Positions 10,775 to 48,920 of a stretch of DNA of 64,000 nt are shown here, piece by piece. Location: sequence record MK308676.1; one strand, written 5' to 3'. The translations under genes were made by a program, and so were the position numbers. Position 1 is the stretch's first letter. Each line of letters begins with the position of its first letter. The notes below the pieces were generated by a model, which ran no database searches, was not told the DNA's origin, and worked only from the letters and a program-made list of their open reading frames with translations.

Positions 10775-12991
10775 ATGTCGTTAATACAAAGCGATGCCCC
10801 TTTCTTTATAGATACGCACGCAGACATAGACCCACATAAGTTTCTAAGTACTACGTGTGGCTATGAAGCATGGGAAATCGAATATGCTTGTGAAGCGATT
10901 GACTTTATTCTAAACGCACTACCCATGGTGCGCTGTGAAGAACACAACAACGTTGTCCGCGTCGGTGGATTCTGGGCAAGAGACTTGAACAATGACGTGC
11001 GTAAAGAATGGGGTTCTCAAAGAATCAACAACTCTATCTTTATAGATTTAAGTGCACGTCAGTTAGTCTTCCATAGTTTCTTCGCAGTAGAAGTTCTTTA
11101 CATCTTAGAAGTCTTAAAGAAAAGACAAACTAAGACGTCCAACTCGGCCATCGAAGAGATGTCCCGAGCCATCTACGAAAACACGTGGATAAAGAAAGCT
11201 CAAGAGCGTTCGCCGTTATCTATTAACTGGTCGGCCATCTCTCGAGACATGAACGTTACTCTGTTGGAATCTCAGCGTAACTTCATTGTTAACTATTCCC
11301 GTTACGTTCCTAAGATGAACCTAAACGGGATGATGTTAGCAGCTCCTCCTGGTACAGGTAAGACAATTGCCGGATTCAGTTTCTCGCTAGCAATGAGTGC
11401 TGACATCACCATCTTTGCTGTTCCTAAGAACTCACTTACTGAGGTTTGGGAAGAGACAATCAAAACGCGCTTTAAAAAGAAGCAGAAGTATTGGATAAGT
11501 ACGCGGGGCGATAACCCTACAGGTAAAGAGAAGTATATTATCTGTCACTACGAATCCCTACAGAAGCTTGTAGATATTGCTCCGCGTTTAGCAAGTAAGA
11601 ATGTCGTTATTTGGCTCGATGAGTCCCATAATTTTAATGAGGAGTCATCTACCCGTACCAATCGCTTTGTTAGTCTTTGTAAACAATCTAGAGCCGAGCA
11701 TGTAGTCTGGGCATCTGGCACACCTCTAAAAGCTATCGGTAAGGAAGCAGTACCTTTCCTTACAACAACTGACCCTCTCTTTACAGAAGCCGTTAGAAAG
11801 CCTTTCATAGGTATCTTCGGGTCGACTAAAGCTCGTGCACTCGACATACTACATAACCGTCTAACTAAGGTTACGTTTAAAGTTGAGAAAGCAACAGTCG
11901 TTAATAATGAGAAAGAAGAATACGTCACTCACATTAAGACGAAAGATTCACACCTTTATACACTAATGCAGGTCCGTCAAGACGTTAAAGCTTTTGTCCA
12001 GGAGCGTAACGTCCACTACCAAGCAGAGATGCCTGAGATTGTAAGACGAACACAAGAACTGCTTAGTAACTTCGAGACTACCCGTAAGACCCAAGAAGAG
12101 AAAGTTGCTTACCGCAATTATCGCTTTATGGTCGAAGAAGTACGTAAGGGTCTCAACATGGAACTACATAAAGACTGGCTCCCGTTGATGAAGCGCTATG
12201 AAAAAGAAGAGATAGAACCTACGATGGATATGGCTACGAAGAAAGAATTTCGTAAGCTTATCTCTCGCTACAAGTATATCGTTCTTGTTATTCGCGGAGA
12301 AGCACTAGGACTAGTAGTTACACGCAAACGAATCGATGCAATTAAGTCTTTAGTGGCTGAGTCTCCTTTTGGTAGCATTATTAACCAATCTGAGAAAAAG
12401 ACGCTTATCTTTACGTCTTATGTGGATGTAGCAAACGCAGTAAAAGATAAAGTAAAAGGTCAGGGCTTTGAGCCACTGATGGTCTATGGCAGTACTAACT
12501 TGCAGCTAACAGACATAATGACTAAGCTTAAAGAAGACCCTAAAGCCAACCCGCTTATTGCAACCTACGCTTCTCTTTCTACAGCGGTTCCCGTCATCGA
12601 GTGCAACACGGTAGTCCTCTGCGATGAGGCATTCCGCGTACACATTCGCAAACAGGCCATTTCGCGTGTCGACCGTTTAGGTCAAGATGCCAAAGTTCAC
12701 GTAGTCTCGCTTCTTTTAGATACGAGACCGGACGATAACATCACTACTCGCTCTTTAGACATCATGAAGTGGTCTAAGGAAATGGTAGACCAAATGTTAG
12801 GTGTCGATAGTGAAGACGAAGTAGAAATTGCTATGGAAAGTTGCTACGACCTCTTAGAACAGACCGAAGAATGGGAAGAAGTTCCTAGCATTGAAGGCTA
12901 CCGTGTAGAAGCGGAACCTATTCCTGAGAAAGTAGTTAACTACTCTTGCATATTTGATATTCCTCGTCGTTACTTCCAAGAAGCAGCATAA
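10775..12991 (+). CDS. SF2 (DEAD/SNF2-like) helicase, probably virion-associated
   Basis: Walker A APPGTGKT, Walker B LDESH, motif VI SRVDRLGQ; C-terminal IAMES; AAATCTAATAG motif upstream. Confidence 0.88.
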   Translation: MSLIQSDAPFFIDTHADIDPHKFLSTTCGYEAWEIEYACEAIDFILNALPMVRCEEHNNVVRVGGFWARDLNNDVRKEWGSQRINNSIFIDLSARQLVFHSFFAVEVLYILEVLKKRQTKTSNSAIEEMSRAIYENTWIKKAQERSPLSINWSAISRDMNVTLLESQRNFIVNYSRYVPKMNLNGMMLAAPPGTGKTIAGFSFSLAMSADITIFAVPKNSLTEVWEETIKTRFKKKQKYWISTRGDNPTGKEKYIICHYESLQKLVDIAPRLASKNVVIWLDESHNFNEESSTRTNRFVSLCKQSRAEHVVWASGTPLKAIGKEAVPFLTTTDPLFTEAVRKPFIGIFGSTKARALDILHNRLTKVTFKVEKATVVNNEKEEYVTHIKTKDSHLYTLMQVRQDVKAFVQERNVHYQAEMPEIVRRTQELLSNFETTRKTQEEKVAYRNYRFMVEEVRKGLNMELHKDWLPLMKRYEKEEIEPTMDMATKKEFRKLISRYKYIVLVIRGEALGLVVTRKRIDAIKSLVAESPFGSIINQSEKKTLIFTSYVDVANAVKDKVKGQGFEPLMVYGSTNLQLTDIMTKLKEDPKANPLIATYASLSTAVPVIECNTVVLCDEAFRVHIRKQAISRVDRLGQDAKVHVVSLLLDTRPDDNITTRSLDIMKWSKEMVDQMLGVDSEDEVEIAMESCYDLLEQTEEWEEVPSIEGYRVEAEPIPEKVVNYSCIFDIPRRYFQEAA

Positions 12992-12997
12992 AGATAA

Positions 12998-13023
12998 CCT
13001 CTTCTATCGAAAGATAGAAGAGG
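12998..13023 (+). terminator. Hairpin after the helicase gene
   Basis: CCTCTTCTATC-GAAA-GATAGAAGAGG, 11-bp stem; abuts the GAATCTTATG motif at 13023. Confidence 0.65.
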
Positions 13024-13055
13024 AATCTTATGAACCACACTTTAAGGAACTAACA

Positions 13056-13757
13056 ATGGCTAAGAAACTATGGCCTATTGAGTTCGGACCTTTCTATACA
13101 CCAGAGCAATTAGCTTCCATGGGCACCTTCGAAGGCAGGTACTGGGAATCGGTTGCTAAGTCAGGTAAGAAACCAATAGGTAACATGAAAAGTTGGAAGT
13201 CTTTTGAGAACGTCGTATCTTTTTCAAAGGAAGAAAGAGACCCTAAAAAGTTTAATAAGTTCGGTGTTAAGTCTCGTTCTGATTTAAGCGATTGGCGCTC
13301 TAAAGGCTGGCTGACTAAAAACTCTCCTTTTGGTCACTACCAATGGTACATTCACTTCTTCTTTGGTCGTCGAGAAATCGAACACAAAGGTAAATCGGAA
13401 GACGAATGGCAGATTGGAAGATGGCGCTCTTATATTGCGCGACATATGGGCGGTATAAAGGCAAGAGGTGGAGCTACCGACAAACAGAAGCAAGGCATGT
13501 TGCAGTGGTACTGGAACTATGAACATTCCTTTAACGAGAAGAGAATCGAAACCAACGCTAAGAAGATGGCTCGGGCCACCAAGTCAGAAATCTGCACGAT
13601 GGACGAGTTCTTAATTGAATATGGCTTTAAGAAACCGCCTAAAGAGAAAGAAGAAGTTTCTCAGGAGTCCCTAATCGTTACGACTAATCCTTGGGAAGAG
13701 TCTCGAGAAGAAGTTAAGATTATTACACCTGAAACTCACCCTAGTTTCTTTTACTAA
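13056..13757 (+). CDS. Conserved protein of unknown function (FGVKS..S.WR.KGW...WY..FFFGRR...RW..Y.ARH family)
   Basis: Trp/Arg-rich motifs; own GAATCTTATG motif and AAGGA SD (start reassigned to MAKKLW); C-terminal VSQES. Confidence 0.7.
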   Translation: MAKKLWPIEFGPFYTPEQLASMGTFEGRYWESVAKSGKKPIGNMKSWKSFENVVSFSKEERDPKKFNKFGVKSRSDLSDWRSKGWLTKNSPFGHYQWYIHFFFGRREIEHKGKSEDEWQIGRWRSYIARHMGGIKARGGATDKQKQGMLQWYWNYEHSFNEKRIETNAKKMARATKSEICTMDEFLIEYGFKKPPKEKEEVSQESLIVTTNPWEESREEVKIITPETHPSFFY

Positions 13758-13766
13758 AGATATGAT

Positions 13767-13798
13767 GTCCTCTCTGTCTCCTAGGAGACAGAGAGGAC
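13767..13798. terminator. Bidirectional terminator, perfect 32-bp palindrome
   Basis: GTCCTCTCTGTCTCCT|AGGAGACAGAGAGGAC between convergent genes. Confidence 0.8.
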
Positions 13799-13802
13799 TT
13801 TA

Positions 13803-14309
13803 TTAGTCCAGTTTAGGTAAATTGTAGATAGCCGAGAATCGATTAGTTGTAGCGTATTTGTATACTTCTGAAATGGGCTTACCTGAAGGCTTATCGTCGT
13901 CGGTGTAAAGTAAATCCATGATAACTATGGTCTTAGCGTAGGATTTACGTAGCTCTTCAATTTGACGAACATATTCCAATTCAACGGTTTTCTCATACGA
14001 ATCTTTAGAATGTACTAACTGTTCTACATCGGTCATGTCGCCTTCTTTACCTTTAGCAAAGACTTTAAATGGAGACTTGTCGTATGACGTAGCAATTAAG
14101 ATACGTTTGTCCTTTTCGTAAAGTCCTAGAGCAGTGGCGATAAAGGTATAGATTTCATCCGCTACAGCTTTATTCCAAGTACCGACGCCAATGACAATAA
14201 CTTCTCGCTTTTCGAAGGTTTCTTGTGCGCCCGCCAATGTTTCGCGGATTTTATTCATGGCCGTAACTTCTTTTAAAGAGGCATCCATGATTGGATTGGT
14301 TCTTAACAT
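13803..14309 (-). CDS. Hypothetical protein (168 aa; start MLRTNP)
   Basis: AGGAG SD before ATG 14309. Confidence 0.75.
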   Translation of the reverse strand: MLRTNPIMDASLKEVTAMNKIRETLAGAQETFEKREVIVIGVGTWNKAVADEIYTFIATALGLYEKDKRILIATSYDKSPFKVFAKGKEGDMTDVEQLVHSKDSYEKTVELEYVRQIEELRKSYAKTIVIMDLLYTDDDKPSGKPISEVYKYATTNRFSAIYNLPKLD

Positions 14310-14360
14310 TACTATTCTCCTGTTTGTTCTACATGATTTCACAGTGAAGTTATAAGGAAT

Positions 14361-14387
14361 CTGTCTCTCCTTAAAAAGGAGAGACAG
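14361..14387 (-). terminator. Terminator hairpin
   Basis: CTGTCTCTCCTT-AAA-AAGGAGAGACAG directly after the stop of 14392..15801. Confidence 0.7.
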
Positions 14388-14391
14388 GATA

Positions 14392-15801
14392 TTAAGCTAC
14401 ACCATACTTACGCAAGAATAAGCCAAGCTCATTATTTAAACGAATGACGTATTTCTCATTGGTATCTTCATGAACTACAACTGGGAGACCAATATGGATT
14501 TTCCAAGTAGCCCCAGTGTTACCGACTGCCCAAGTAGTATTAGCGGCAATTGCACCGTTCGCTTCAAAGACTTGTCCTTGGTAAACAACTAGGTCGCCAG
14601 CAGCATAGGCTTCAGACGCAACATAATCCGGAACTGGTTTACCCCACGTCGCATTGCCACGCAGAACCTTACCTCGGTCGCTAGAAGTAGGTGCAGGTAC
14701 GCTGCCTGAAGAACCACCATGGGAAGCTGTTGCTCCTTTCATAATGTTTCGTGCAGCAATAAGCGTAGAACCAATTAGCTTAATAGGTCCTACGTACCAG
14801 TTAGAGGTGTTCGAGGTTGTTGCTGTTTGGAAAGGCGTTGAAGTATTAGCTGCGTGTGAACCTATGCAGACTGCGAAGTACTCGGCATCGTCACTAATTA
14901 CAACATCGTTAGCATTGTAAGCAATGCTATCACGCCACAGGCCTCTAAATCCAGTTACGTCTTCGCCACTGACGATTGGTTTCCAGGTGTCGCCTGTCGT
15001 TCCTGGCATAAACGTGGACCGCGATGTCGCGCCATTAGCTTTCCATTGAATTCCTTTATGGAATGTCAGTGCGTCAGCAGGGTAAGCTTTACTGCCCGTC
15101 CAGCCTTCAATGACTGCTCCCCATTCGCCGTCAGACTTTAGAGCTAAGTTAGGGTCAGCCGGTAACTTAGGTACAAGCCCTGGCTTAATAACGGTTGCTT
15201 TAGAGCCATTAGGGTCGAATTGTTGGTCAGGCCATGCTTGGAAGTATGCGCGCCATTTATCCGTGTCTGTCGCACCTGGGTTATAAACAGCATCGTTAAA
15301 GTTTGTTGCTGAGGATGACGTATGGTCCGTCGTACAGATTAGGAAAAGGCCATTGCCTGCGTAAATGTAATCGCCTAACTTATAGTTAAAAGACGATTGC
15401 CAGCTACCTTTAAAGTTTTCTTCATCCGATGCGTCTAGTGCAAAGCGAATAGGTGTCCAGCGTGAAGTCTCGGTACCAATTAACGGATTAGGTAAAGGCC
15501 CATTTGCTCCGTTAGCTTTTAGATAGATGTTGCCAAAGCGAATTAAATCGCCTTTAGCGTAAACGCGAGTGCTGTCGTGCGGCGCGATGTTCAAGTCGCC
15601 TAATTCTGGTGAAATCCAGTATTGGTCAGTGTATCCCGTAATAGGAATGCGGTAAGTTGTCTCTGGTAAACTATCAGCCAAAGTAGCGGCTTTGTACATC
15701 AATCCCGTTTCATGACAAAAAACGATGCCTGGAGTTGGATGATGCGCCTTCATTTGCGCGATAGTATCTTTCATTAGACCGTTTATGGTAGAAACGTTCA
15801 T
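14392..15801 (-). CDS. Multi-repeat carbohydrate-binding (CBM5/12, ChtBD3-like) virion/fibre protein
   Basis: Five W/Y-x5-Y-xx-[G/A/N]D-x-[V/I/T]-xxx-G-xx-[YWF] repeats; two fibre-like GLVP/GSVP...G.W spacers. Confidence 0.7.
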   Translation of the reverse strand: MNVSTINGLMKDTIAQMKAHHPTPGIVFCHETGLMYKAATLADSLPETTYRIPITGYTDQYWISPELGDLNIAPHDSTRVYAKGDLIRFGNIYLKANGANGPLPNPLIGTETSRWTPIRFALDASDEENFKGSWQSSFNYKLGDYIYAGNGLFLICTTDHTSSSATNFNDAVYNPGATDTDKWRAYFQAWPDQQFDPNGSKATVIKPGLVPKLPADPNLALKSDGEWGAVIEGWTGSKAYPADALTFHKGIQWKANGATSRSTFMPGTTGDTWKPIVSGEDVTGFRGLWRDSIAYNANDVVISDDAEYFAVCIGSHAANTSTPFQTATTSNTSNWYVGPIKLIGSTLIAARNIMKGATASHGGSSGSVPAPTSSDRGKVLRGNATWGKPVPDYVASEAYAAGDLVVYQGQVFEANGAIAANTTWAVGNTGATWKIHIGLPVVVHEDTNEKYVIRLNNELGLFLRKYGVA

Positions 15802-15962
15802 AGTTAAAAAATCCTTATAAGTGCACTATAGGGGTCATTAAATTAGTCCGCTCTAAATAAACTCGTTTATTTAATGGCGACAAATCTTCTAGAGTATGAC
15901 CAACATTTATATAACAAAAAACATACCTTTTCACCACACCTTTCCTGTAAGGGGAATAAAAG

Positions 15963-17009
15963 ATGACAAGTAAAAAAGTAAGAAGCATGGCTTGGTTCCG
16001 TGATTACTTTTCAGATGCTAATTCTGGAGTAGAGAATGGGATACCTGACGGTTTCGAAATCACAAGTGAAAACGGTGCATTTACCATCGTTAAAATTGTA
16101 GGCGAGGACAGACACGTTCTTGGCTCCATGGGTATGGAAGAAAGCTTCTTCCGAGACTCCATACGTACGGGTTCTTCTTCCGTACAAGTAGGTGGTCGAC
16201 ACTCCATGGGGTCGGCAGGTGAAAATGCCGGCTTCATTAATCTACATACAAACATTTTTTACCATCCGGGATTATGGCACGGAATAGGCATCGATGGAGA
16301 AGACGACTATTTAGAAACCACTCGACATCTAGAAAAACTAGAAGAAGTGCAAACGGACGCGGGCGGCTACGGTAGTCTCTTTATCGATTACAACTTTTTA
16401 GCTAATCCGTTCTCTTTTAATTTCTGTCTTCATCGCGTCAAGTTTTGGCCTGAGGCGTACCGCGGTCGCATTGTTTGGGAAACCATAATGGATGGCGGTG
16501 AGGTATCGAAGGCTTATGCAGACATTGATACTGATGGAAACACAGAATATGTCTTGCAGTTACCGTATCCGATTTTTGTCCCCAAAGGTAAAGCGGTTAT
16601 TTATCGTGTAACAAAAGAAAACGGCGCATATCTAAGAATAAAGAACGGGGATACTGACCCAGCCGTAGGTATGCGTACTGGCTATCTAAGACGATACGAT
16701 GACTACCAGGCGATTAATGGCTATTGTTTTATAACTGCTTCTGGAGATTATCTCCATAATGCACATCACTTGGTAGATGCTTCGGGCGGTGCCATTGTTG
16801 TCGACGTTGAAGACAATAAACATTTAGCGGCGTTCTCAATTAGGGACGCTAACGGCACCATAGGCGGTGCCAACACTTTAGAAATACAGTTCGGCGGACA
16901 AGGTTCTGTTAACATTGTTAACCCTAATCACTATTATACTTTTGTTAAGGATAAAGCAGGCGAGTGGTGGGCACTCAATGAAATTACCGGAGTCAACCGA
17001 AAAGTTTAA
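15963..17009 (+). CDS. Putative virion/fibre-associated protein
   Basis: First gene of the fibre operon; AAATCTTCTAG motif at 15882; N-terminal RSMAWFR. Confidence 0.6.
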   Translation: MTSKKVRSMAWFRDYFSDANSGVENGIPDGFEITSENGAFTIVKIVGEDRHVLGSMGMEESFFRDSIRTGSSSVQVGGRHSMGSAGENAGFINLHTNIFYHPGLWHGIGIDGEDDYLETTRHLEKLEEVQTDAGGYGSLFIDYNFLANPFSFNFCLHRVKFWPEAYRGRIVWETIMDGGEVSKAYADIDTDGNTEYVLQLPYPIFVPKGKAVIYRVTKENGAYLRIKNGDTDPAVGMRTGYLRRYDDYQAINGYCFITASGDYLHNAHHLVDASGGAIVVDVEDNKHLAAFSIRDANGTIGGANTLEIQFGGQGSVNIVNPNHYYTFVKDKAGEWWALNEITGVNRKV

Positions 17010-17032
17010 CCCTGTAAAAACGGAGTCGGTCC

Positions 17033-17956
17033 ATGACAGACACTATTATTATTACCTTAGGGGCTGATGTAAAAGCAGCCCAAGATACTGTAGGCGATGC
17101 GGACAGTGGACTGGTAAAGCAAGTTAATGACCTTTCCGGTCAATCCACTTCTTTTCTCGTTGACCGAAGTGACAGCAGTCAAAATTTGGACACTTACCTT
17201 TCCCCAGGACGGTTTTATTTAAGTGCCGTCGATGACGCCCCATCCGCACTAGACGGTATATCGGAGTTTATTCTTAGCGTTAAGTCTGGACCTGTCGATG
17301 AAGACCATTATGTCGTTCAAGAAATTTCAGGTCTTAACAATTCGGACAATGCGCCAAAGCTCACCAGAACTATTTTTGTAAATGCCGATGGCAGTTTAGG
17401 CCTAATCGGCTCATGGCGAGGCGTAGGCACAACCGTCGACATGGAAACTGCCATTGCTAGCCTAGATATTAAAACGCGTTATCCCGAAGTTACTGTCGGC
17501 AAACAATGGTCTTCTACTGAAACAGACGACTATGCAGATATTTTAGTGGGCCAAGAACTTTCCCCTAATTATACCGGCATTACTTTTGATTTGGAACTAC
17601 GTACTCGTTTAAACGGCGGAGATTATCAGTGGGCTCTTTATGCTACTCCGTCGGGTGGGTCGGTTAACACAACATGTTGGTTTGCGAGAACCAGTGACCT
17701 GGGCACAGGTGGCGGTACACAGCGCGAAGCTATGACTAGCTATGTTAAGTTCAACCGTAACCAAAACTCGCGAGTGGCTGTAACGGGCTGGCAAGATATC
17801 GACAACCCTACAATCTTTACCTTAGTAGTTTCTCGCCACGGTAGTACCGACCCTGACGCTACGATTATTAAGGGTGAGTACATGTTTAACGATTCGGACT
17901 ACGGAATACTTAACTTCCGTGTTGTGGGCGTTAATGAAAACAACATAACGATATAA
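17033..17956 (+). CDS. Tail-fibre/receptor-binding paralog 1
   Basis: Conserved N-terminus DTIIITLGAD...VGD..SGLVKQVNDL, a (D/N)L...PG.FY...AP fibre repeat, then a unique C-terminus. Confidence 0.65.
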   Translation: MTDTIIITLGADVKAAQDTVGDADSGLVKQVNDLSGQSTSFLVDRSDSSQNLDTYLSPGRFYLSAVDDAPSALDGISEFILSVKSGPVDEDHYVVQEISGLNNSDNAPKLTRTIFVNADGSLGLIGSWRGVGTTVDMETAIASLDIKTRYPEVTVGKQWSSTETDDYADILVGQELSPNYTGITFDLELRTRLNGGDYQWALYATPSGGSVNTTCWFARTSDLGTGGGTQREAMTSYVKFNRNQNSRVAVTGWQDIDNPTIFTLVVSRHGSTDPDATIIKGEYMFNDSDYGILNFRVVGVNENNITI

Positions 17957-17965
17957 GGAAGCATC

Positions 17966-18895
17966 ATGAGTGATACAATCGTCCTAGGACTACAGGCTGA
18001 CGTAGATGCCCTTAAAACTACCGTAGGTAACAATAGTTCAGGCTTAGTGCAAGCCGTCAACCAGTTAGAGTCCGAAGGCGGAAGCGAAATTACAGACCGC
18101 ACTGGCGAAGTAGTAAACTTGAATAACGAGTTAAATCCTCAAGTGGCTTGGTTGTCTGAGGTTACTAATCTCCCATCGGATGCCCCTACTACGGGAGCGC
18201 TCTATCTCTTGACAATAGAGGGCGTTCGAGACCAAGCCGAACAAACCGTGAAACAAACGGTTTCGCTCTTCATGCCAGGCAATGATTTCCCAGAAGGTCA
18301 ATGGTCACGTCATGTCTACTTTAGTGGAAATGCCGTGAGTGGACGTTCTGATTGGCGAACGGACCTTTTCACTGGCCCTCAATTGGACCGGTTCAGTATT
18401 TACCATGAAGAGATAGCACGATATTCCGGTAGACTTGTTGCAGCCGGTACTTCATCTGAAAACTTTAATTCTCAGTTTATGGTTCCAGATACTAAAATTG
18501 GAAATGACAGTTCGGAGTTTAACATTCGTATTGACTCTTTCCTTTCAGGAACAACTCCCGGTATTCGTATCTCGGCCGATAGTGCTAATACATGCAACTA
18601 TTTCATGGGCTATATGCTGTCTAACGACTACGGTGCTAATGACACAGTAGAAGAGCAAGCCTCTGAACATTACGGTTCCATGACGCGAAGTCGCGATACG
18701 CGAGAATATAAACTAGGCCCACACGCCTCACGTCGTAGCGTTTACTTTAGAATCGTAATAGGTCGCGGTGGCGGTAACAATAAAGAAAACATGGTTGTCG
18801 AAGGCAACGTTACAAGAGGCGAAACAGACAACGAAGTTGTCTGGGCTTGTCGTGTGGTTTCCAATAGCAAAAATAACGAGGTAGTCGATGTCTAG
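17966..18895 (+). CDS. Tail-fibre/receptor-binding paralog 2
   Basis: N-terminus DTIVLGLQAD...VGN..SGLVQAVNQL is paralogous to 17033. Confidence 0.65.
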   Translation: MSDTIVLGLQADVDALKTTVGNNSSGLVQAVNQLESEGGSEITDRTGEVVNLNNELNPQVAWLSEVTNLPSDAPTTGALYLLTIEGVRDQAEQTVKQTVSLFMPGNDFPEGQWSRHVYFSGNAVSGRSDWRTDLFTGPQLDRFSIYHEEIARYSGRLVAAGTSSENFNSQFMVPDTKIGNDSSEFNIRIDSFLSGTTPGIRISADSANTCNYFMGYMLSNDYGANDTVEEQASEHYGSMTRSRDTREYKLGPHASRRSVYFRIVIGRGGGNNKENMVVEGNVTRGETDNEVVWACRVVSNSKNNEVVDV

Positions 18896-19838
18896 TCCAG
18901 ATACAATCGTCATAAGTACCAAGTCTGACTTTGATGAGGTAAATACCGACATAGGTGATGCGGCAGCCGGATTAGTTAAAAGAGTCAACGACTTAGAGCT
19001 TTCTGGTGGCAATAAGCCTTATGAGAAACTTACATCGAGTTTAGATTTAAACTCGCTACAGGAAGACGGCGGATATTTTGCTACGGCCGTGACGAACGGT
19101 CCTCCGATGACAGCATTTGAAAACACGCACTATCCAAACTTTATGATTGAAGTGTCGTCTACCGCATCAAGCGGTGCGCGCATCATGAAAAAGAAACTCT
19201 ATTGGATATCTGTTAACGGTTTTCAGGTTATATGGCAAAGAACTTATTCAGTGGCAGCAGATGACACCGTTACGGCGGACGATGACTGGGAAGAAATAAT
19301 ACAGTCTCAATATTCTGGTTTACCGCGCGGAAAAGAATATGAGCTCGATAAGATGGAAAGTGGTGGCATCATAACTTTCACTACCAGCGATAACTTAGAA
19401 AGAACCGGATGGCTCTTAAGGAACTTTAGTTCAGCCATTACCGCTAACAGCGTACCTGCCTTAAGTATCCGAGTTAGATATCGTTATAACTCCGATAACC
19501 AGAGACAATATAAACTGGAACTGGTTACAGTGGCCGATTGGCTGGTTGCCTCAGCGTCTCTTTCTATAGGAGAAGCTACATCAACGGGTTCCGGCTCACA
19601 TACCGAATTCTGCGATGAGTCATCTAGCATTGTACGTAACAACAATGAAATGGTTCTTTTCGACTGGATGGATTCACGTCGTGCAGTACACGGGACCATT
19701 ATGGTTGTTAACAACATCATTTCTGTTCCTACATCTGTGACGTTAGAACTCACTACATACATTATCGACACCAACCGGGTGGCGTTACATGTTCGTGAAG
19801 TTTCAGCAGACCAAGCCGAACTAAGTTACCTACCATAA
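18888..19838 (+). CDS. Tail-fibre/receptor-binding paralog 3
   Basis: N-terminus DTIVISTKSD...IGD..AGLVKRVNDL; DLNSLQEDGGYF...NGP repeat. Confidence 0.65.
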   Translation: MSSPDTIVISTKSDFDEVNTDIGDAAAGLVKRVNDLELSGGNKPYEKLTSSLDLNSLQEDGGYFATAVTNGPPMTAFENTHYPNFMIEVSSTASSGARIMKKKLYWISVNGFQVIWQRTYSVAADDTVTADDDWEEIIQSQYSGLPRGKEYELDKMESGGIITFTTSDNLERTGWLLRNFSSAITANSVPALSIRVRYRYNSDNQRQYKLELVTVADWLVASASLSIGEATSTGSGSHTEFCDESSSIVRNNNEMVLFDWMDSRRAVHGTIMVVNNIISVPTSVTLELTTYIIDTNRVALHVREVSADQAELSYLP

Positions 19839-22750: not shown

Positions 22751-24136
22751 CTATTTGTCTTCTTTTAGGCAGATGGTTTGGTCTGCGCGGCGGACATCTA
22801 ACTTATCGATTTCGTCACGGTAACCATGTAGTTTAAAGCCAAGGTTAAGCGTTTCCATTTTGTTGAGCATGTCTTGAGCAATGCGTCGCACCGTCGGATG
22901 GACAGTAGGCCCGGACCTAAGCTCGGCCGTATAAACAGCATTGTCGATTGGGTAAGACGTTTCCGTTGCAACGCGGTAACCCATCGGTATGATGTATTCC
23001 CAGTCCCAATGTTCGTTGTCGCCCCAGCCATGTACCGTTAAGTCCATGTAGGTCTTGTGGATTTTATCCAGTAAAGCTTCTACGATAGAACGAGCTTCTT
23101 CAGGCATTTGCTCTAGGTACCACGGTTCGAAACCAATCTGTGTGCCTAGCGGACTACGAGAAGTATTGCCTTTACGATGGCGGTTTAGGTCACGGTAACC
23201 GCCGAAGTCAACATTGTAGTTGAACTTAAGACGTCCGAAGTTACCTAGGTAGTCGGCCAGAGGAGCATACTTAGGGCGCTCTGCTAGATGACGTGCCCAT
23301 TGTTGGATGCCTACAGAGTCCAGTAGACGAGAGTCCATATGAACCTGTCCGATGGCATCACGATGTGTTGGTGGGACAGCTGCGCTCGGCATCATCTGAT
23401 GGTTAGCGCGGTGCTGCATAGACGCCCACATAGCGATGTCGTCCGTTAGCGAAGTAAACGACTCTGGGTAGCGTTCACAAAGACTAGCGTGCATGTCACG
23501 AGCCATCAGGCGCACTTCTTCGTTAGGGTGGCCCCATAGAACACGAAGGACGTAAGAAGCGTTCTGTAGGTCTACGTCCCAAACGCCTACAGTTTTACAA
23601 CCAGCAGGAAGAAGAGAGCGACAGATGTCAAACTTACGAGCGTTCAATGTAGCGTCCCATTTCTTATCGCTTACGCCTTCTGGTTTAGTTAGCGTAGCTT
23701 TAAGATGGTCGAACACCATAGGCTGGATGATTTCGTAGACAGACATTGTCTCTTCAATCAGTGGACGGAAACGTTCCATTGTTTCGGGTAGATAAACGCC
23801 TTCTGCTTCAAAAGGAATATATCGTGTAGAAGCTTCAGTGCCTTTATAAAGAGGATTAAGGTTTTGCAGTTCGTTAATAGCAATCATAGAGACGCCAGAA
23901 ACGAAGACTTTCGTGTGTCCCTGTTTGCCTACCGATTCGTGACCATAGCCCAAATAAATCGATTTCATGAAGCGCTCAGGGCCTTCGGCCATAACTTTGG
24001 CAAGGTTGCCTTTAGGCCCTTCCTGAGAGCGAGAACAAAGAGCAGACAACATGGCGGATGCTTGAGCGTCTAGATTGTAGTCGGCTGCGTCGACAACGCT
24101 AACTTGACGTTCTGCTGTTTCTGATTTAAATGTCAT
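22751..24136 (-). CDS. thyX: FAD-dependent thymidylate synthase, long two-domain type
   Basis: GYGHESVG, FDICRSLLPAGCKT and DFGGYRDLNRHR motifs. Confidence 0.85.
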   Translation of the reverse strand: MTFKSETAERQVSVVDAADYNLDAQASAMLSALCSRSQEGPKGNLAKVMAEGPERFMKSIYLGYGHESVGKQGHTKVFVSGVSMIAINELQNLNPLYKGTEASTRYIPFEAEGVYLPETMERFRPLIEETMSVYEIIQPMVFDHLKATLTKPEGVSDKKWDATLNARKFDICRSLLPAGCKTVGVWDVDLQNASYVLRVLWGHPNEEVRLMARDMHASLCERYPESFTSLTDDIAMWASMQHRANHQMMPSAAVPPTHRDAIGQVHMDSRLLDSVGIQQWARHLAERPKYAPLADYLGNFGRLKFNYNVDFGGYRDLNRHRKGNTSRSPLGTQIGFEPWYLEQMPEEARSIVEALLDKIHKTYMDLTVHGWGDNEHWDWEYIIPMGYRVATETSYPIDNAVYTAELRSGPTVHPTVRRIAQDMLNKMETLNLGFKLHGYRDEIDKLDVRRADQTICLKEDK

Positions 24137-24897
24137 TATTCTATCTCTTTTAGTAGTGCGGATTGTTCGCGATATTTATTAAAATGGTCAGCCCAAAGCA
24201 TTTCGATTACGTTCGGTTTAAGCTGACGATGTGCCTCAATTAATGTCTCTAGTCTTTCTTTTCTGCATGACCAATAATAGTCGAAAGCCAGACGCAAAGT
24301 TGGAAAGGTTCGATTCTTTCCGTTTCTTGGGTTAACATTATAGATAACGTTTTCGTTGGACGAGTTACCTTTTGGGTAAATGCCGGTTAACTTCCCTGCT
24401 GTATTTCTTTCGGCCAGAGAAGCATTGATGGCTCTAGGTAATAAGACGCAGGTTTCGGGAGAATAGAGTCGAAGTCCTTGTCCCACGAGGTCTTTGTCCA
24501 CTTCCCAGACATCTTTACCTGTAGGTTGATTTTCTGTAAACCACTTTGCCCAGACTTGAAAATTCCACCAAGATTTGTCTACTTCGACGCCTTTATAAAA
24601 CAACCACCTAGGGCCTTTCTCATCATAGCACCTTTGGAACGTATTTCTCCATATGTTAAATAAATGCTTGCCTCGAAAGCGCGTCTTTGATGTAAAGTCA
24701 CCTTCTCCTAGAAAGCCCCTTCCGTAGACGGATGGGAAATAGGGGTCTCGTAGTTGTCCGTTCTCAGCCTTGTGTTTCGTCGTCCACTTAACGTAGCCGG
24801 TAAGGAGAAAGGAGACCCTTACCCGTTTACAGGTAACAATTTCTTCTATCCTAAAAGAACCTGTTCTCTGTGAAGCGTAGGTATCTCCTATATTCAT
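24136..24897 (-). mobile_element. Free-standing HNH homing endonuclease
   Basis: VYGRGFLG, IWRNTFQRCY, W.NFQ.WAKWF and EVDKDL...YSPETCVLLP..IN motifs; TAATG-coupled to thyX. Confidence 0.8.
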
Positions 24898-27406: not shown

Positions 27407-28648
27407 ATGACAATGGATATCCGCGAATCGATTAATGCCGCACTAAATGCTAATCGCCTAGAAAACGCTGAAACATTTACTGTAGCCGAGACTCAGCAAC
27501 TTATGACTGAGTTCACTACTCTAGCTAAAGAACACTTCGAAGCATCTAACGTTCTAGCTGCTCTTGAGAGACTCATGGTTGAGTCTAAAGGTGCTAAGCC
27601 ACAACTTGTACTGTCACAAGCAAACATGCTCTTAGGGGAGCGCTGGGAGCTTTCTCTACCTTCCATGGAATCGTACGACGAACTAACTACCGAAGTTGCA
27701 ATGGAAGGTATTGTGGATGTCGGTAAGAAGATTCTTAAGTTCGTTAAAGACACAGCTAAGTCACTTAAGAAGAAAGGCAAGGTGTTCTTCCGTGCTTTAG
27801 GTAACCTATTCCGTAACGACTACCAAATCGCTCAAGACGTTCTAGCGGAGCTAAATGGTAAACCTGACTTTAAAGAAGGCGAACTTAGCTTTAGCGACGG
27901 TGGTCAATTCTTCATGGGTGAAGGTGTGGAATACCGCACTGCTGCTGAAGTAGTGACTGCGATGGCTTCTAACATTCTTACTCTAGACGCTGAGCGTTTT
28001 AATAAGCTATTCTCAGATGCAGCTAAAGCAGTAGCATTTGCTGAGAACGATGCGGCCATGAATATCAGTGAAGTTACTAAGCACTGCATTGAGACCATGA
28101 ACCTCAATCATACTTCTGACCACGATGAGAAAGCGTACTACATCACTGACGGTAAAGTACCAGGTAGCTGGAAATACAGCGCAGTAACTGAGAAAGCAGT
28201 TGTGGGCGGTCAGATTGCCGAATTCCTTATGGAAGGCGACTCTATTCTGCCGCGCCGTCGCGGTGGCATTAAGATGCAGGCGATGACTGAAGAAGAAGTA
28301 CGTGCAGTTTGTGACGTAATCATGAAGTACTCTCAGCATGGACAGAACTTAGTTTCCGTTATGGCTGACCGTTACTGGGATACTGTGGCTTACATGGATA
28401 AAGTAGATAGCTCCATGTGGGAAACTCACGAGTACACGGATTACGAGAAAGACGAAGATGGTAACGATGTAGAAATCACTACGACCATCACTTACGACTT
28501 AGCTCGCAATGAACAACACTGGAAAGCATACGTTCGCATTTCTAATGTGTTCTGGGTAACCATGCATTACCTAAACGCTCTATTCAGTCACGCTAGTAAC
28601 TGTAACAAAGCAATGGCCGAAATGGCTCAGTCTTCTTACGAAGTATAA
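27407..28648 (+). CDS. Inner head protein (phiKZ gp93/gp162/gp163-like) with cleaved propeptide
   Basis: Glu-rich N-terminus ending PSMES...EVAMEG (gp175-type S/A/G-X-E sites), followed by a basic segment. Confidence 0.75.
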   Translation: MTMDIRESINAALNANRLENAETFTVAETQQLMTEFTTLAKEHFEASNVLAALERLMVESKGAKPQLVLSQANMLLGERWELSLPSMESYDELTTEVAMEGIVDVGKKILKFVKDTAKSLKKKGKVFFRALGNLFRNDYQIAQDVLAELNGKPDFKEGELSFSDGGQFFMGEGVEYRTAAEVVTAMASNILTLDAERFNKLFSDAAKAVAFAENDAAMNISEVTKHCIETMNLNHTSDHDEKAYYITDGKVPGSWKYSAVTEKAVVGGQIAEFLMEGDSILPRRRGGIKMQAMTEEEVRAVCDVIMKYSQHGQNLVSVMADRYWDTVAYMDKVDSSMWETHEYTDYEKDEDGNDVEITTTITYDLARNEQHWKAYVRISNVFWVTMHYLNALFSHASNCNKAMAEMAQSSYEV

Positions 28649-47159: not shown

Positions 47160-48920
47160 ATGTACGATAACAAAATCATTAGACTCGCACGTTATGCGGG
47201 AGAAGACTTAGAATTCATGCCGTGGTTCTTTGTGGACGACGACAGCGGAGTTACTCAGAAGGAAATCCCTGAGTTTAAGAATACGCTTTCGTTTGACGCG
47301 AACGATATCTGCGAGAAAGAAGGTAAACTGTACTACACAGAAGAAGCCTTAGCTCCGGCAGACTGGGACGACACTAAGTGGAAGGAAATCGCTGTAGTGT
47401 TGGCTTACTTAAACAACCACAAGACTTATCTGGAATACGAACTTGACTCTTTCGTTCTTCACGAAGACGTCATCTATAAGAACAACAAAGTAGTGTCTGG
47501 AGAGTTCAACAGTGCCGACTGGGACGAAGTAGATGTAAACACGCTTATTGCTGACATCTATACCTACACCGCAGCAGGTGCTTCTTTGGAGATTACTACT
47601 CTAGCTTCTATGCCATCAGCTAAGCTAGGTTTGTTCGCTCCTGAAATCGTGCTACCTACTCCAGGTACAGGTACGGCTTCATTCTTTATGTATTACCCTT
47701 CGTGGTCTACTCAGACGTTTGGTTTGGGTGATACAGACGCTGTATTGCGTAAACCGTCTAACATGCCTGACTATGTAACTCACACCATGTTGAGCTTTGC
47801 TAAGGCACATGGCTTTACGTTTGATAAGAGCTCCCCTGACATTGCTGAAGCAAACACGGGCTTGCAGTTCCCTGTAGGAATCGACGCAGCTATTCTTAAA
47901 GAAGATATCGCTAAAGCTCAGGCAGCCGGACAGAAGGTTTACATTTCAGTGGGCGGTGCTACTTACGGACGTGACGCTGGTCGCTTAGACCCATGGACTA
48001 ACATGATTACTGAGGCGAAGGACTTAATGTCAGGTACCGCATTTGATGCACTTACTCACGTTGAGACAGACGCATACATTCAGTTCATGGAGTACTTCGA
48101 GCTAGACGGTATCGACTTGGACTTCGAAGACAACCCAGCTTACCACAACAACGACTTTGTTGAGTACCTAGAGAACTACCATGCTCTCTGTTACCTGATG
48201 CGCTACATTGCCGATGCTGCGGCTACAACGCTCACTAAGACTGTTGAAACTGCAAGTGCTTGTTGGTCTACTGGTTTTGACCAAACGGCTCGCTCTAAGG
48301 CAGACACAAACACTCCTGGCGCAGACCATGAACTAATCGGTTACTTCGGTGACCATGCTGGTCGTGACCGTATGGCTTTCGGTGGTTTCACTGATAGTGC
48401 AGGCGATGCTCGGAATGCCGCACAATACATCGACAACTATATCCTTATGTCGTACGACGCGATGTTCGGTAATCATAAAGACGGTAACCCTGAAACAGAT
48501 TCAGATTCCCTTTATGACCCGGTCGTTTGTTACAACGAGGCACGTGCTATTATTCCGGCCTCTAAAGTGGTAGCTATTGGTTTAATTGCTGGTGACCACG
48601 GTTTCGGTGACCACTACCTAATGTTGAATGATGCTGACTGTTCTGATACAGCCCCTCATCAGACTCTATTAGAGAAAGACCAATATCAACGTTTCGTTAT
48701 GGCTCCTTATTCAGTAGAGCGCCTATGTCGTACGGTTCGTGAAAACGAAGTGAATGATAAAGACGGTTGCTTGATGTGGGCAGCATTTAAACTGCTCGGC
48801 GATGGTGCTACGTATGAGTTCGATGGAGTTAAAGCAGGTACTGTTACAGAAATCTGTGAGAAAGCTTCTTTAGAGTTCGGCGTCGGTACTGAAACTGGTT
48901 ACGTGATGGATTACGTATAA
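47160..48920 (+). CDS. GH18 chitinase with N-terminal CBM-like repeats
   Basis: LDGIDLDFE (DxxDxDxE), YYPSW, THTMLSF, KVYISVGG, MSYD and GCLMW, all in canonical order. Confidence 0.87.
   Translation: MYDNKIIRLARYAGEDLEFMPWFFVDDDSGVTQKEIPEFKNTLSFDANDICEKEGKLYYTEEALAPADWDDTKWKEIAVVLAYLNNHKTYLEYELDSFVLHEDVIYKNNKVVSGEFNSADWDEVDVNTLIADIYTYTAAGASLEITTLASMPSAKLGLFAPEIVLPTPGTGTASFFMYYPSWSTQTFGLGDTDAVLRKPSNMPDYVTHTMLSFAKAHGFTFDKSSPDIAEANTGLQFPVGIDAAILKEDIAKAQAAGQKVYISVGGATYGRDAGRLDPWTNMITEAKDLMSGTAFDALTHVETDAYIQFMEYFELDGIDLDFEDNPAYHNNDFVEYLENYHALCYLMRYIADAAATTLTKTVETASACWSTGFDQTARSKADTNTPGADHELIGYFGDHAGRDRMAFGGFTDSAGDARNAAQYIDNYILMSYDAMFGNHKDGNPETDSDSLYDPVVCYNEARAIIPASKVVAIGLIAGDHGFGDHYLMLNDADCSDTAPHQTLLEKDQYQRFVMAPYSVERLCRTVRENEVNDKDGCLMWAAFKLLGDGATYEFDGVKAGTVTEICEKASLEFGVGTETGYVMDYV

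Follow-up and report, generated by a model that had tools for sequence, protein, structure and literature searches.

QAX96246.1 of the jumbo vibriophage vB_VmeM-Yong, a fibre-family protein with five repeats of predicted CBM5/12 type

The T4 protein Hoc, a capsid protein that uses Ig-like domains and has mucin glycans as its ligands, stands for the 'bacteriophage adherence to mucus' model. Carbohydrate-binding modules (CBMs) of the CBM5/12 type have been solved in chitin-related proteins, namely in the tandem CBM12 pair of Vibrio chitin-oligosaccharide deacetylases and in the chitin-binding domain (ChBD) of ChiA1, and small beta knobs have also been solved in the tail proteins of phages 7-7-1, KP1 and Pa193, with the authors of the 7-7-1 structure not terming the domain a CBM. 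Here, we analysed a stretch of DNA (the window) that represents the final 64 kb of the Vibrio phage vB_VmeM-Yong (100% identity to four records; window base 1 is base 226536 of MK308674). On its minus strand, positions 14392..15801 hold a gene for a 469-amino-acid (aa) protein, QAX96246.1, labelled 'hypothetical protein' in GenBank. This protein consists largely of five repeats, R1 to R5, and two copies of a spacer motif, S1 and S2, and it belongs to a known kind, the phage fibre proteins with CBM modules, within a family that is structurally uncharacterised. vB_VmeM-Yong itself is a jumbo myovirus of roughly 278-290 kb with Vibrio mediterranei as its host, and a paper citing the Yong phages grouped them near the PhiKZ-related Vibrio phages BONAISHI and pir03.

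Repeat architecture and the spacer family

An earlier examination of the letters alone (hereafter the sequence-only reading) had described five aromatic repeats, arranged as a duplicated unit of two repeats and a spacer followed by a fifth repeat, and no catalytic domain. This architecture was confirmed throughout. A hidden Markov model (HMM) built only from the 23 repeats of QAX96166.1, a 1444-aa protein of the same phage, and thus independent of our segmentation of QAX96246.1, which was first made by eye, matched exactly R1 to R5, at aa 75-91, 134-164, 237-258, 289-305 and 393-424 (independent E-values, in this order, of 5e-4, 1e-2, 2e-3, 2e-4 and 2e-10). When QAX96246.1 was shuffled 1000 times, 991 versions gave no match, nine gave one and none gave two or more. 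Besides, a leave-one-out HMM with 3000 shuffles per segment placed R1, R3 and R5 beyond all shuffles (0/3000 each), with R2 (25/3000) and R4 (20/3000) as the weakest repeats (p about 0.007-0.008). The odd-numbered repeats are short and the even-numbered ones longer, with a Cys...His stretch, and these subtypes bear out the duplicated unit. Two peptides quoted in the sequence-only reading were both found, at aa 134-151 (R2) and aa 393-412 (R5). Pfam and PHROGs match nothing else in the protein, of which only 72 and 33 aa are left outside repeats and spacers.

To judge from the alignments, the spacer is the most widespread element and the dominant signature of the family. Scored with a motif HMM of 238 metagenomic segments, whose consensus has the core GLVPAP...FLRGDGTW and a GATxS stretch before it, S2 reached 61.6 bits and S1 (aa 207-229) 8.7 bits; since the latter level is reached by about one in 1000 shuffles, S1 is taken as a degenerate copy of the motif. 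In the 290-kb Yong genome, the motif is confined to QAX96246.1, with S2 as its only full copy. A word-index homologue search with QAX96246.1 returned only the protein itself and one marginal match, and an exhaustive HMMER search recovered 861 cluster representatives at E<=1e-3, 157 of them at E<=1e-10. These relatives are long proteins with several matches each, mainly via S2 and R5. Across the 150 best matches, coverage peaked at aa 350-390 (more than 550 domain hits), followed by R5 and then by R4 and R3, and there was almost none for residues 1-130 and 445-469.

S2 of QAX96246.1 matches phrog_4302 (E 9e-4), a group that takes in 17 of 18 aligned family members and has no assigned function, and single members also match many PHROGs labelled tail fiber or tail collar fiber. 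Among the domains of other relatives are collagen triple-helix repeats, which imply trimers, as well as CBM_5_12, BppU_N, phi29 head-fibre, Phage_fiber_rpt and F5/8-type-C domains. Both homologues that we examined come from phage contigs; terminase and portal genes lie near the first, and the second belongs to a PhiKZ-like jumbo phage. Searches of the PDB with the family profile and with the motif-rich homologue P0007 found no solved structure containing the spacer motif. The motif thus marks a very large fibre family, with 861 representatives and phrog_4302, that has neither a solved structure nor an assigned function.

Along the protein, the features run as follows, all encoded on the minus strand. 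The N-terminal region (aa 1-72, 15586..15801) is phage-specific and modelled at a pLDDT (predicted local distance difference test score) below 40; it is covered by none of the 150 best homologues, has no paralogue elsewhere in the phage and is presumed to be the virion-attachment part. R1 (aa 73-119, 15445..15585; pLDDT 64-76), like the other repeats supported by the HMM tests above, is of the odd type, yet degenerate, with His75 instead of the N-terminal aromatic and Pro104-Asn105-Pro106, without an aromatic, at the ligand position. The even-type R2 (aa 132-186, 15244..15408) has Trp134, Tyr140, Cys156...His160, Tyr173 or Phe168, and Trp183, and phrog_14251 matches aa 130-186. S1 (aa 204-229, 15115..15192; GLVP...LKSDGEW) leads to the odd-type R3 (aa 232-276, 14974..15108), the best-modelled part of the protein (pLDDT ~90), with Trp234, Tyr240, Trp253, Phe264 and Trp273. 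It is followed by the even-type R4 (aa 287-340, 14782..14943; Trp289, Tyr295, Cys312...His316, Phe324 and Trp335), by S2 (aa 351-390, 14632..14751; GATAS...GSVPAP...VLRGNATW) and by R5 (aa 391-436, 14494..14631), a bona fide CBM_5_12 module of the odd type with Tyr393, Tyr399, Phe412, Trp424 and Trp433. The C-terminal tail (aa 437-469, 14395..14493) is without relatives and unmodelled, and the stop codon occupies 14392-14394. A reading of 14392-15801 as a chance open reading frame (ORF) was dismissed, given the deposited coding sequence, the 861 relatives and the repeats that survive the controls. A 2024 seawater metagenome contained a single 235-nt contig identical to 14454-14688, that is, to part of S2 and R5; the phage or its S2/R5 module is thus present in the sea at low depth, which is uninformative on function.

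Relation of the knobs to CBM5/12 modules

The assignment of the repeats to CBM5/12, likewise put forward in the sequence-only reading together with a Pfam scan as a check, was supported directly for one repeat only. R5 scored 31.3 bits against a CBM_5_12 cut-off of 26.2 and R1 to R4 stayed below it; scanned singly, R1 to R3 gave no match and R4 gave E 0.018, below threshold. The link for the remaining repeats is transitive, through the paralogue HMM and the family profile. On the one hand, QAX96166.1, whose repeats detect R1 to R5, matches CBM_5_12 (PF02839) with 118 bits. On the other hand, a profile of 18 family members aligns the pair of an odd and an even repeat over its whole length with the CBM12 tandem of the chitin-oligosaccharide deacetylases of V. 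campbellii, V. cholerae and V. parahaemolyticus (best E 5e-5), and R5 aligns with the first CBM12 of the V. campbellii enzyme and with the ChiA1 ChBD. This indirect but consistent evidence suggests that all five repeats are homologous to CBM5/12 members.

A residue table showed the core Tyr and the C-terminal Trp in all five repeats. At the position of the surface tryptophan of CBM12 (deacetylase, ChiA1), R2 to R5 have an aromatic (Tyr173 or Phe168, Phe264, Phe324 and Trp424, respectively), Trp424 of R5 aligning with the tryptophan itself, and R1 has none; most of the 23 repeats of QAX96166.1 also keep this aromatic. CBM5 modules typically have an adjacent aromatic pair. Such a pair occurs in none of the five repeats of QAX96246.1.

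The AlphaFold monomer of QAX96246.1 has a mean pLDDT of 55, with 70-91 in the knob cores, where it predicts a CBM5/12-like, small antiparallel beta fold of ~45 residues. Foldseek linked the model to the Vibrio deacetylase 9jeo (E 4e-4). R3 compared with the CBMs of chitinases and deacetylases at Z 4.1-5.3, a range that the tool calls middling, and with N-proximal fibre knobs at Z 7.0 (7-7-1 tail fibre, root-mean-square deviation (rmsd) 1.6 over 47 aa), 5.6 (KP1 baseplate) and 4.8 (Pa193 fibre). The fold matches equally well fibres and tailspikes of Agrobacterium, Klebsiella, Pseudomonas and Acinetobacter phages and a cyanobacterial injection system. In these proteins, the counterparts are N-proximal, at aa 73-119 of the 7-7-1 fibre (9rkv_M), aa 48-93 in KP1 (9f4a), aa 77-127 in Pa193 (9b45_2) and aa 21-73 in phiAB6 (5js4). 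In the ESM Atlas, QAX96246.1 sits beside all-viral CBM_5_12 clusters and Mtd_N/PTR clusters, and a viral structure library held many such repeat proteins from Streptomyces, Erwinia, Aeromonas and Vibrio phages. When R1-R2 and R3-R4 were run as single sequences against the PDB, the matches were at chance level (coronavirus nsp3, GFP-like proteins) and were disregarded.

Genomic setting and related modules

The phage as a whole holds roughly 30 CBM5/12-type modules, most of them in QAX96166.1 (MK308674 179217-183551, plus strand), which is built almost wholly from a tandem array of at least 23 CBM5/12-like repeats and has phrog_9851 'tail fiber protein' as a match (E 3e-43). Its gene is one of several very large genes on the same strand (those upstream encode 1901 aa and 1455 aa), a block that resembles a tail-fibre module, and the pir03 counterparts of the genes adjoining this block sit among baseplate and PAAR genes. 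QAX96166.1 has the repeat type in common with QAX96246.1, its long-type repeats showing nearly the sequence pattern of R5, but differs in the number of its tandem repeats, in having no fibre motif and in lying 60 kb away. Besides, two ORFs overlap at MK308674 202855-204674: one of 184 aa, whose residues 72-92 match CBM_5_12 weakly (E 0.003), and, at its start, one of 426 aa with a right-handed beta-helix (28.4 bits). In the cultured Vibrio phages K354, K406 and K408, the protein with the R5-type knob is annotated as tail fiber protein.

The sequence-only reading had QAX96246.1 transcribed divergently from a 'fibre operon'. The arrangement is as described, an intergenic region of 161 bp (15802..15962) separating the gene from the next one, which starts at 15963 on the plus strand, and the label itself found moderate support. 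Four same-strand genes occupy 15963-19838 on the plus strand, and the last three of them (17033-19838) encode paralogues of 307, 309 and 316 aa with 21-26% identity; ~40 residues in the N-terminal part are conserved, the beta-rich bodies have diverged, and a word-index search gave a single relative outside the group. The 307-aa protein was modelled at pLDDT 59, and the top seven matches of its first beta-domain are all phage receptor-binding or fibre proteins: the Phi11 receptor-binding protein (RBP; Z 9.7), the AS12 tailspike (9.3), the phi812 baseplate (9.3), the R2 pyocin fibre (8.7 and 8.4), the NF5 RBP (8.6) and the Pa193 fibre (7.6), these Z values being just above the level that the tool calls common. 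The three paralogues are thus, with moderate support from modelled folds, receptor-binding-like proteins, which would place the gene of QAX96246.1 in a receptor-binding-like island.

A related arrangement exists in BONAISHI, where ORF153-155 resemble the three paralogues (316-aa protein versus ORF155, E 6e-4) and where a gene beside the orthologous DEAD-like helicase region is 77% identical to its Yong neighbour. Within MH595538 163060-177239, ORF160, ORF162, ORF164 and ORF165, possibly together with ORF158, form a paralogous family, each of the four with an N-terminus of ~75 aa, one CBM-like knob at ~aa 80-115 and a differing distal domain (DUF4457 with 30.5 bits in the case of ORF160). To judge from this build, the family may be a set of exchangeable adhesins. 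Over its first 120 residues, QAX96246.1 is collinear with these proteins in N-terminus and knob, and its gene, like theirs, lies beside the DEAD-like helicase; unlike it, they have one knob each before their distal domain, and none of them has the fibre motif.

The window also encodes a GH18 protein of 586 aa (47160-48920, plus strand), which the sequence-only reading had put forward as a partner of QAX96246.1. Its catalytic motif DGIDLDFE is intact (aa 316-323), the whole protein scores 28.7 bits in Pfam, just below the cut-off of 29.6, and two of its N-terminal stretches (~aa 39-65 and 92-107) resemble the knob repeat weakly (independent E-values 0.05 and 0.016). BONAISHI has an orthologous GH18 frame of 580 aa. 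Genetic linkage did not bear the partnership out: 32 kb and a series of unrelated genes separate the GH18 gene, which is on the opposite strand, from that of QAX96246.1. Knob and GH18 occur together in two of five phages, both of one clade (Yong and BONAISHI), and K354, Aeh1 and HNL01, three of the four other cultured knob phages examined, have no GH18 though the knob is present.

As to expression signals, the ATG of QAX96246.1 has an AAGGA Shine-Dalgarno sequence 10 nt upstream, and a promoter scan found no sigma-70-like site in 15802..15962. A hairpin of 12 pairs with a poor T-run directly follows the stop codon (14361..14387, minus strand) and is possibly a terminator; the number of sites in the promoter and terminator scan of the region was not above shuffle expectation. 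The 10-mer CTTATAAGGA overlaps the Shine-Dalgarno sequence (15802-15830) and has seven copies in the 290-kb genome against 0.55 expected, so that it may be part of an upstream signal common to several sites. Further away, a perfect, strong hairpin (13767-13798; 14 pairs, eight of them G-C) lies between the convergent genes 12954-13757 (plus) and 13803-14342 (minus) and is probably a bidirectional terminator. Elsewhere in the window, a 413-aa protein (27407-28648, plus) has a weak match to a phiKZ-like internal head protein (PF12699, E 2.8e-4, below cut-off). At 22751-24897 (minus), the gene for a 461-aa protein that matches a thymidylate-synthase-like PHROG (E 5e-9) is followed directly by that for an HNH endonuclease (253 aa, phrog_2081, E 5e-27), possibly a homing endonuclease next to a gene of nucleotide metabolism.

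Possible role of QAX96246.1 and comparison with known systems

We consider it probable that QAX96246.1 is an appendage of the particle. That it serves there as an accessory fibre with a polysaccharide of the Vibrio envelope as its main ligand is our preferred yet tentative reading, to which we would give slightly less than an even chance. In such a fibre, aa 1-72 and the degenerate knob R1 would dock the protein to the virion, mirroring the N-proximal knob of solved tail fibres and tailspikes. R1 is regarded as a structural, anchor-side knob because of the collinearity with the BONAISHI proteins and the N-proximal position of its structural matches, with R2 to R5 as extra copies that kept the aromatic. 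The two copies of the fibre motif might form a shaft, probably as a homotrimer, along which R2 to R5 would each offer one conserved aromatic at the sugar-stacking Trp position of CBM12, and many such weak sugar contacts could add up to avid, reversible polysaccharide binding. The ligand may be O-antigen, capsule or a biofilm glycan and is possibly rich in N-acetylglucosamine (GlcNAc), and QAX96246.1 would be one of several interchangeable host-recognition proteins of the receptor-binding island. Several points weigh against this picture. The N-terminal similarity to the BONAISHI ORFs is weak (E 0.02), away from the knob cores the monomer model is of low confidence, and the gene is flanked by DNA-metabolism genes, 60 kb from the large-gene block that resembles the main tail module; in addition, we found neither virion proteomics for Yong or BONAISHI in the literature nor RNA sequencing runs for the phage.

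The sequence-only reading had proposed a multivalent adhesin for chitin, of which the non-catalytic, multivalent array of CBM5/12-type modules on a fibre motif stood, with chitin as a putative ligand. On this account, the knobs would attach particles to crystalline chitin, as on copepod moults or marine snow where Vibrio settles, possibly assisted by the GH18 protein. R5 speaks for it, as it passes the Pfam CBM_5_12 threshold, has the Vibrio deacetylase CBM12 pair and the ChiA1 ChBD as its closest solved sequence relatives and places Trp424 at the surface-tryptophan position, and so do the alignment of the odd and even pair with tandem CBM12, the roughly 30 such modules in the phage and its GH18 protein with an intact catalytic motif and an orthologue in BONAISHI. 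Yet R5 is the only repeat above the threshold, R1 to R3 fail in Pfam altogether, a single aromatic is kept per knob and R1 lacks the key aromatics. The same fold is common in fibres and spikes of phages whose hosts are unconnected with chitin, and CBM_5_12 is also present in a tail protein of a Pseudomonas prophage (PMC12579547). Among 50,697 phage records, a tblastn search with the R5-type knob at E<=1 matched only phages of the chitinolytic hosts Vibrio, Aliivibrio and Aeromonas, but this host restriction is confounded, as short queries recover only close kin. The GH18 gene is distant, three knob phages do without one, and a pair of GH18 and CBM5/12 could equally be aimed at a GlcNAc-containing polysaccharide of the host surface. 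In the literature, we found no direct precedent for phage adherence to chitin via CBM5/12, and the papers on the 7-7-1 structure and on Oenococcus do not discuss the domain as CBM5/12. Altogether, we regard chitin as a doubtful main ligand. A bolder version, in which the whole Yong particle is a chitin-seeking device with ~30 CBM5/12 modules on at least three appendages (QAX96246.1, the 1444-aa fibre and the beta-helix spike) and a particle-borne GH18, appears unlikely; if true, virions would adhere to and move on chitin colonised by Vibrio, a marine counterpart of the phage-adherence-to-mucus model.

Alternatively, the knobs might be inert spacer or stability modules along the shaft, as in many N-proximal tailspike domains, with ligand binding elsewhere, e.g. 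in a partner protein. The best fold matches are indeed N-proximal, non-receptor parts of fibres and spikes, the aromatics of R1 are lost, and a single knob stands between anchor and distal domain in the BONAISHI ORFs and in the beta-helix gene of Yong. However, QAX96246.1 has no distal domain besides its knobs, its last 33 aa being too short for one, and the conservation of the aromatic in R2 to R5 and in most QAX96166.1 repeats is hard to explain without a role in binding or packing, which makes a purely structural function quite unlikely. Even its presence on the particle might be questioned, as the gene sits amid DNA-metabolism genes and not in the main tail block: QAX96246.1 could be produced inside infected cells as an accessory protein and freed at lysis, with a part in the use of chitin or other glycans or in masking of the cell surface. 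Its N-terminus has no visible signal peptide, though, and the fibre motif and all informative relatives indicate virion appendages, so that we consider this very unlikely. Should the protein be particle-borne and glycan-binding, as in the preferred reading of an accessory fibre, it would be a small, defined and expressible probe of how jumbo vibriophages find their hosts. If chitin should turn out to be the ligand, the protein would offer, for the first time, a concrete molecular means of approaching how phages are retained on chitin particles, a major Vibrio habitat, and this would matter for phage ecology and for the use of phages in aquaculture.

Among solved structures, the chitin-related modules are the closest in sequence to R5, which can be aligned with the Vibrio deacetylase tandem CBM12 (8yfp, 9jeo, 4ny2, 3wx7) and the ChiA1 ChBD (1ed7) over 43 residues that include the Y-x-x-G-D core. 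Unlike the Vibrio deacetylase, QAX96246.1 has no catalytic domain, is viral and has five modules instead of two, with a fibre motif interrupting them, and its R1 to R3 are too diverged for Pfam. The solved fibre knobs of 7-7-1 (9rkv_M), KP1 (9f4a) and Pa193 (9b45) share the same small beta fold in the model (rmsd 1.5-1.7 over 42-47 residues), and R1 sits as they do, just after the N-terminal anchor. Their sequences, on the other hand, have no detectable similarity to QAX96246.1, and in these proteins a single knob precedes a long shaft or an enzyme domain, whereas QAX96246.1 is almost only knobs. The likeness to T4 Hoc lies in the idea of a non-essential virion decoration that binds an environmental glycan and concentrates particles near hosts; the domains differ (Ig-like versus CBM5/12-type knobs), and to the capsid site and mucin ligand of Hoc correspond, in QAX96246.1, a putative location and a putative ligand. 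Finally, the metagenomic fibre proteins of phrog_4302 (P0047, P0003, P0009) have in common with QAX96246.1 the unit of spacer, odd knob and even knob, P0047 being 42% identical to it over aa 235-435. At 500-2800 aa, these metagenomic relatives exceed it in length; they have as many as 12 copies of the motif and different anchors (collagen, BppU_N), whereas the termini of QAX96246.1 are unique to it, and its 469 aa make it one of the shortest and simplest members in which to study the spacer family.

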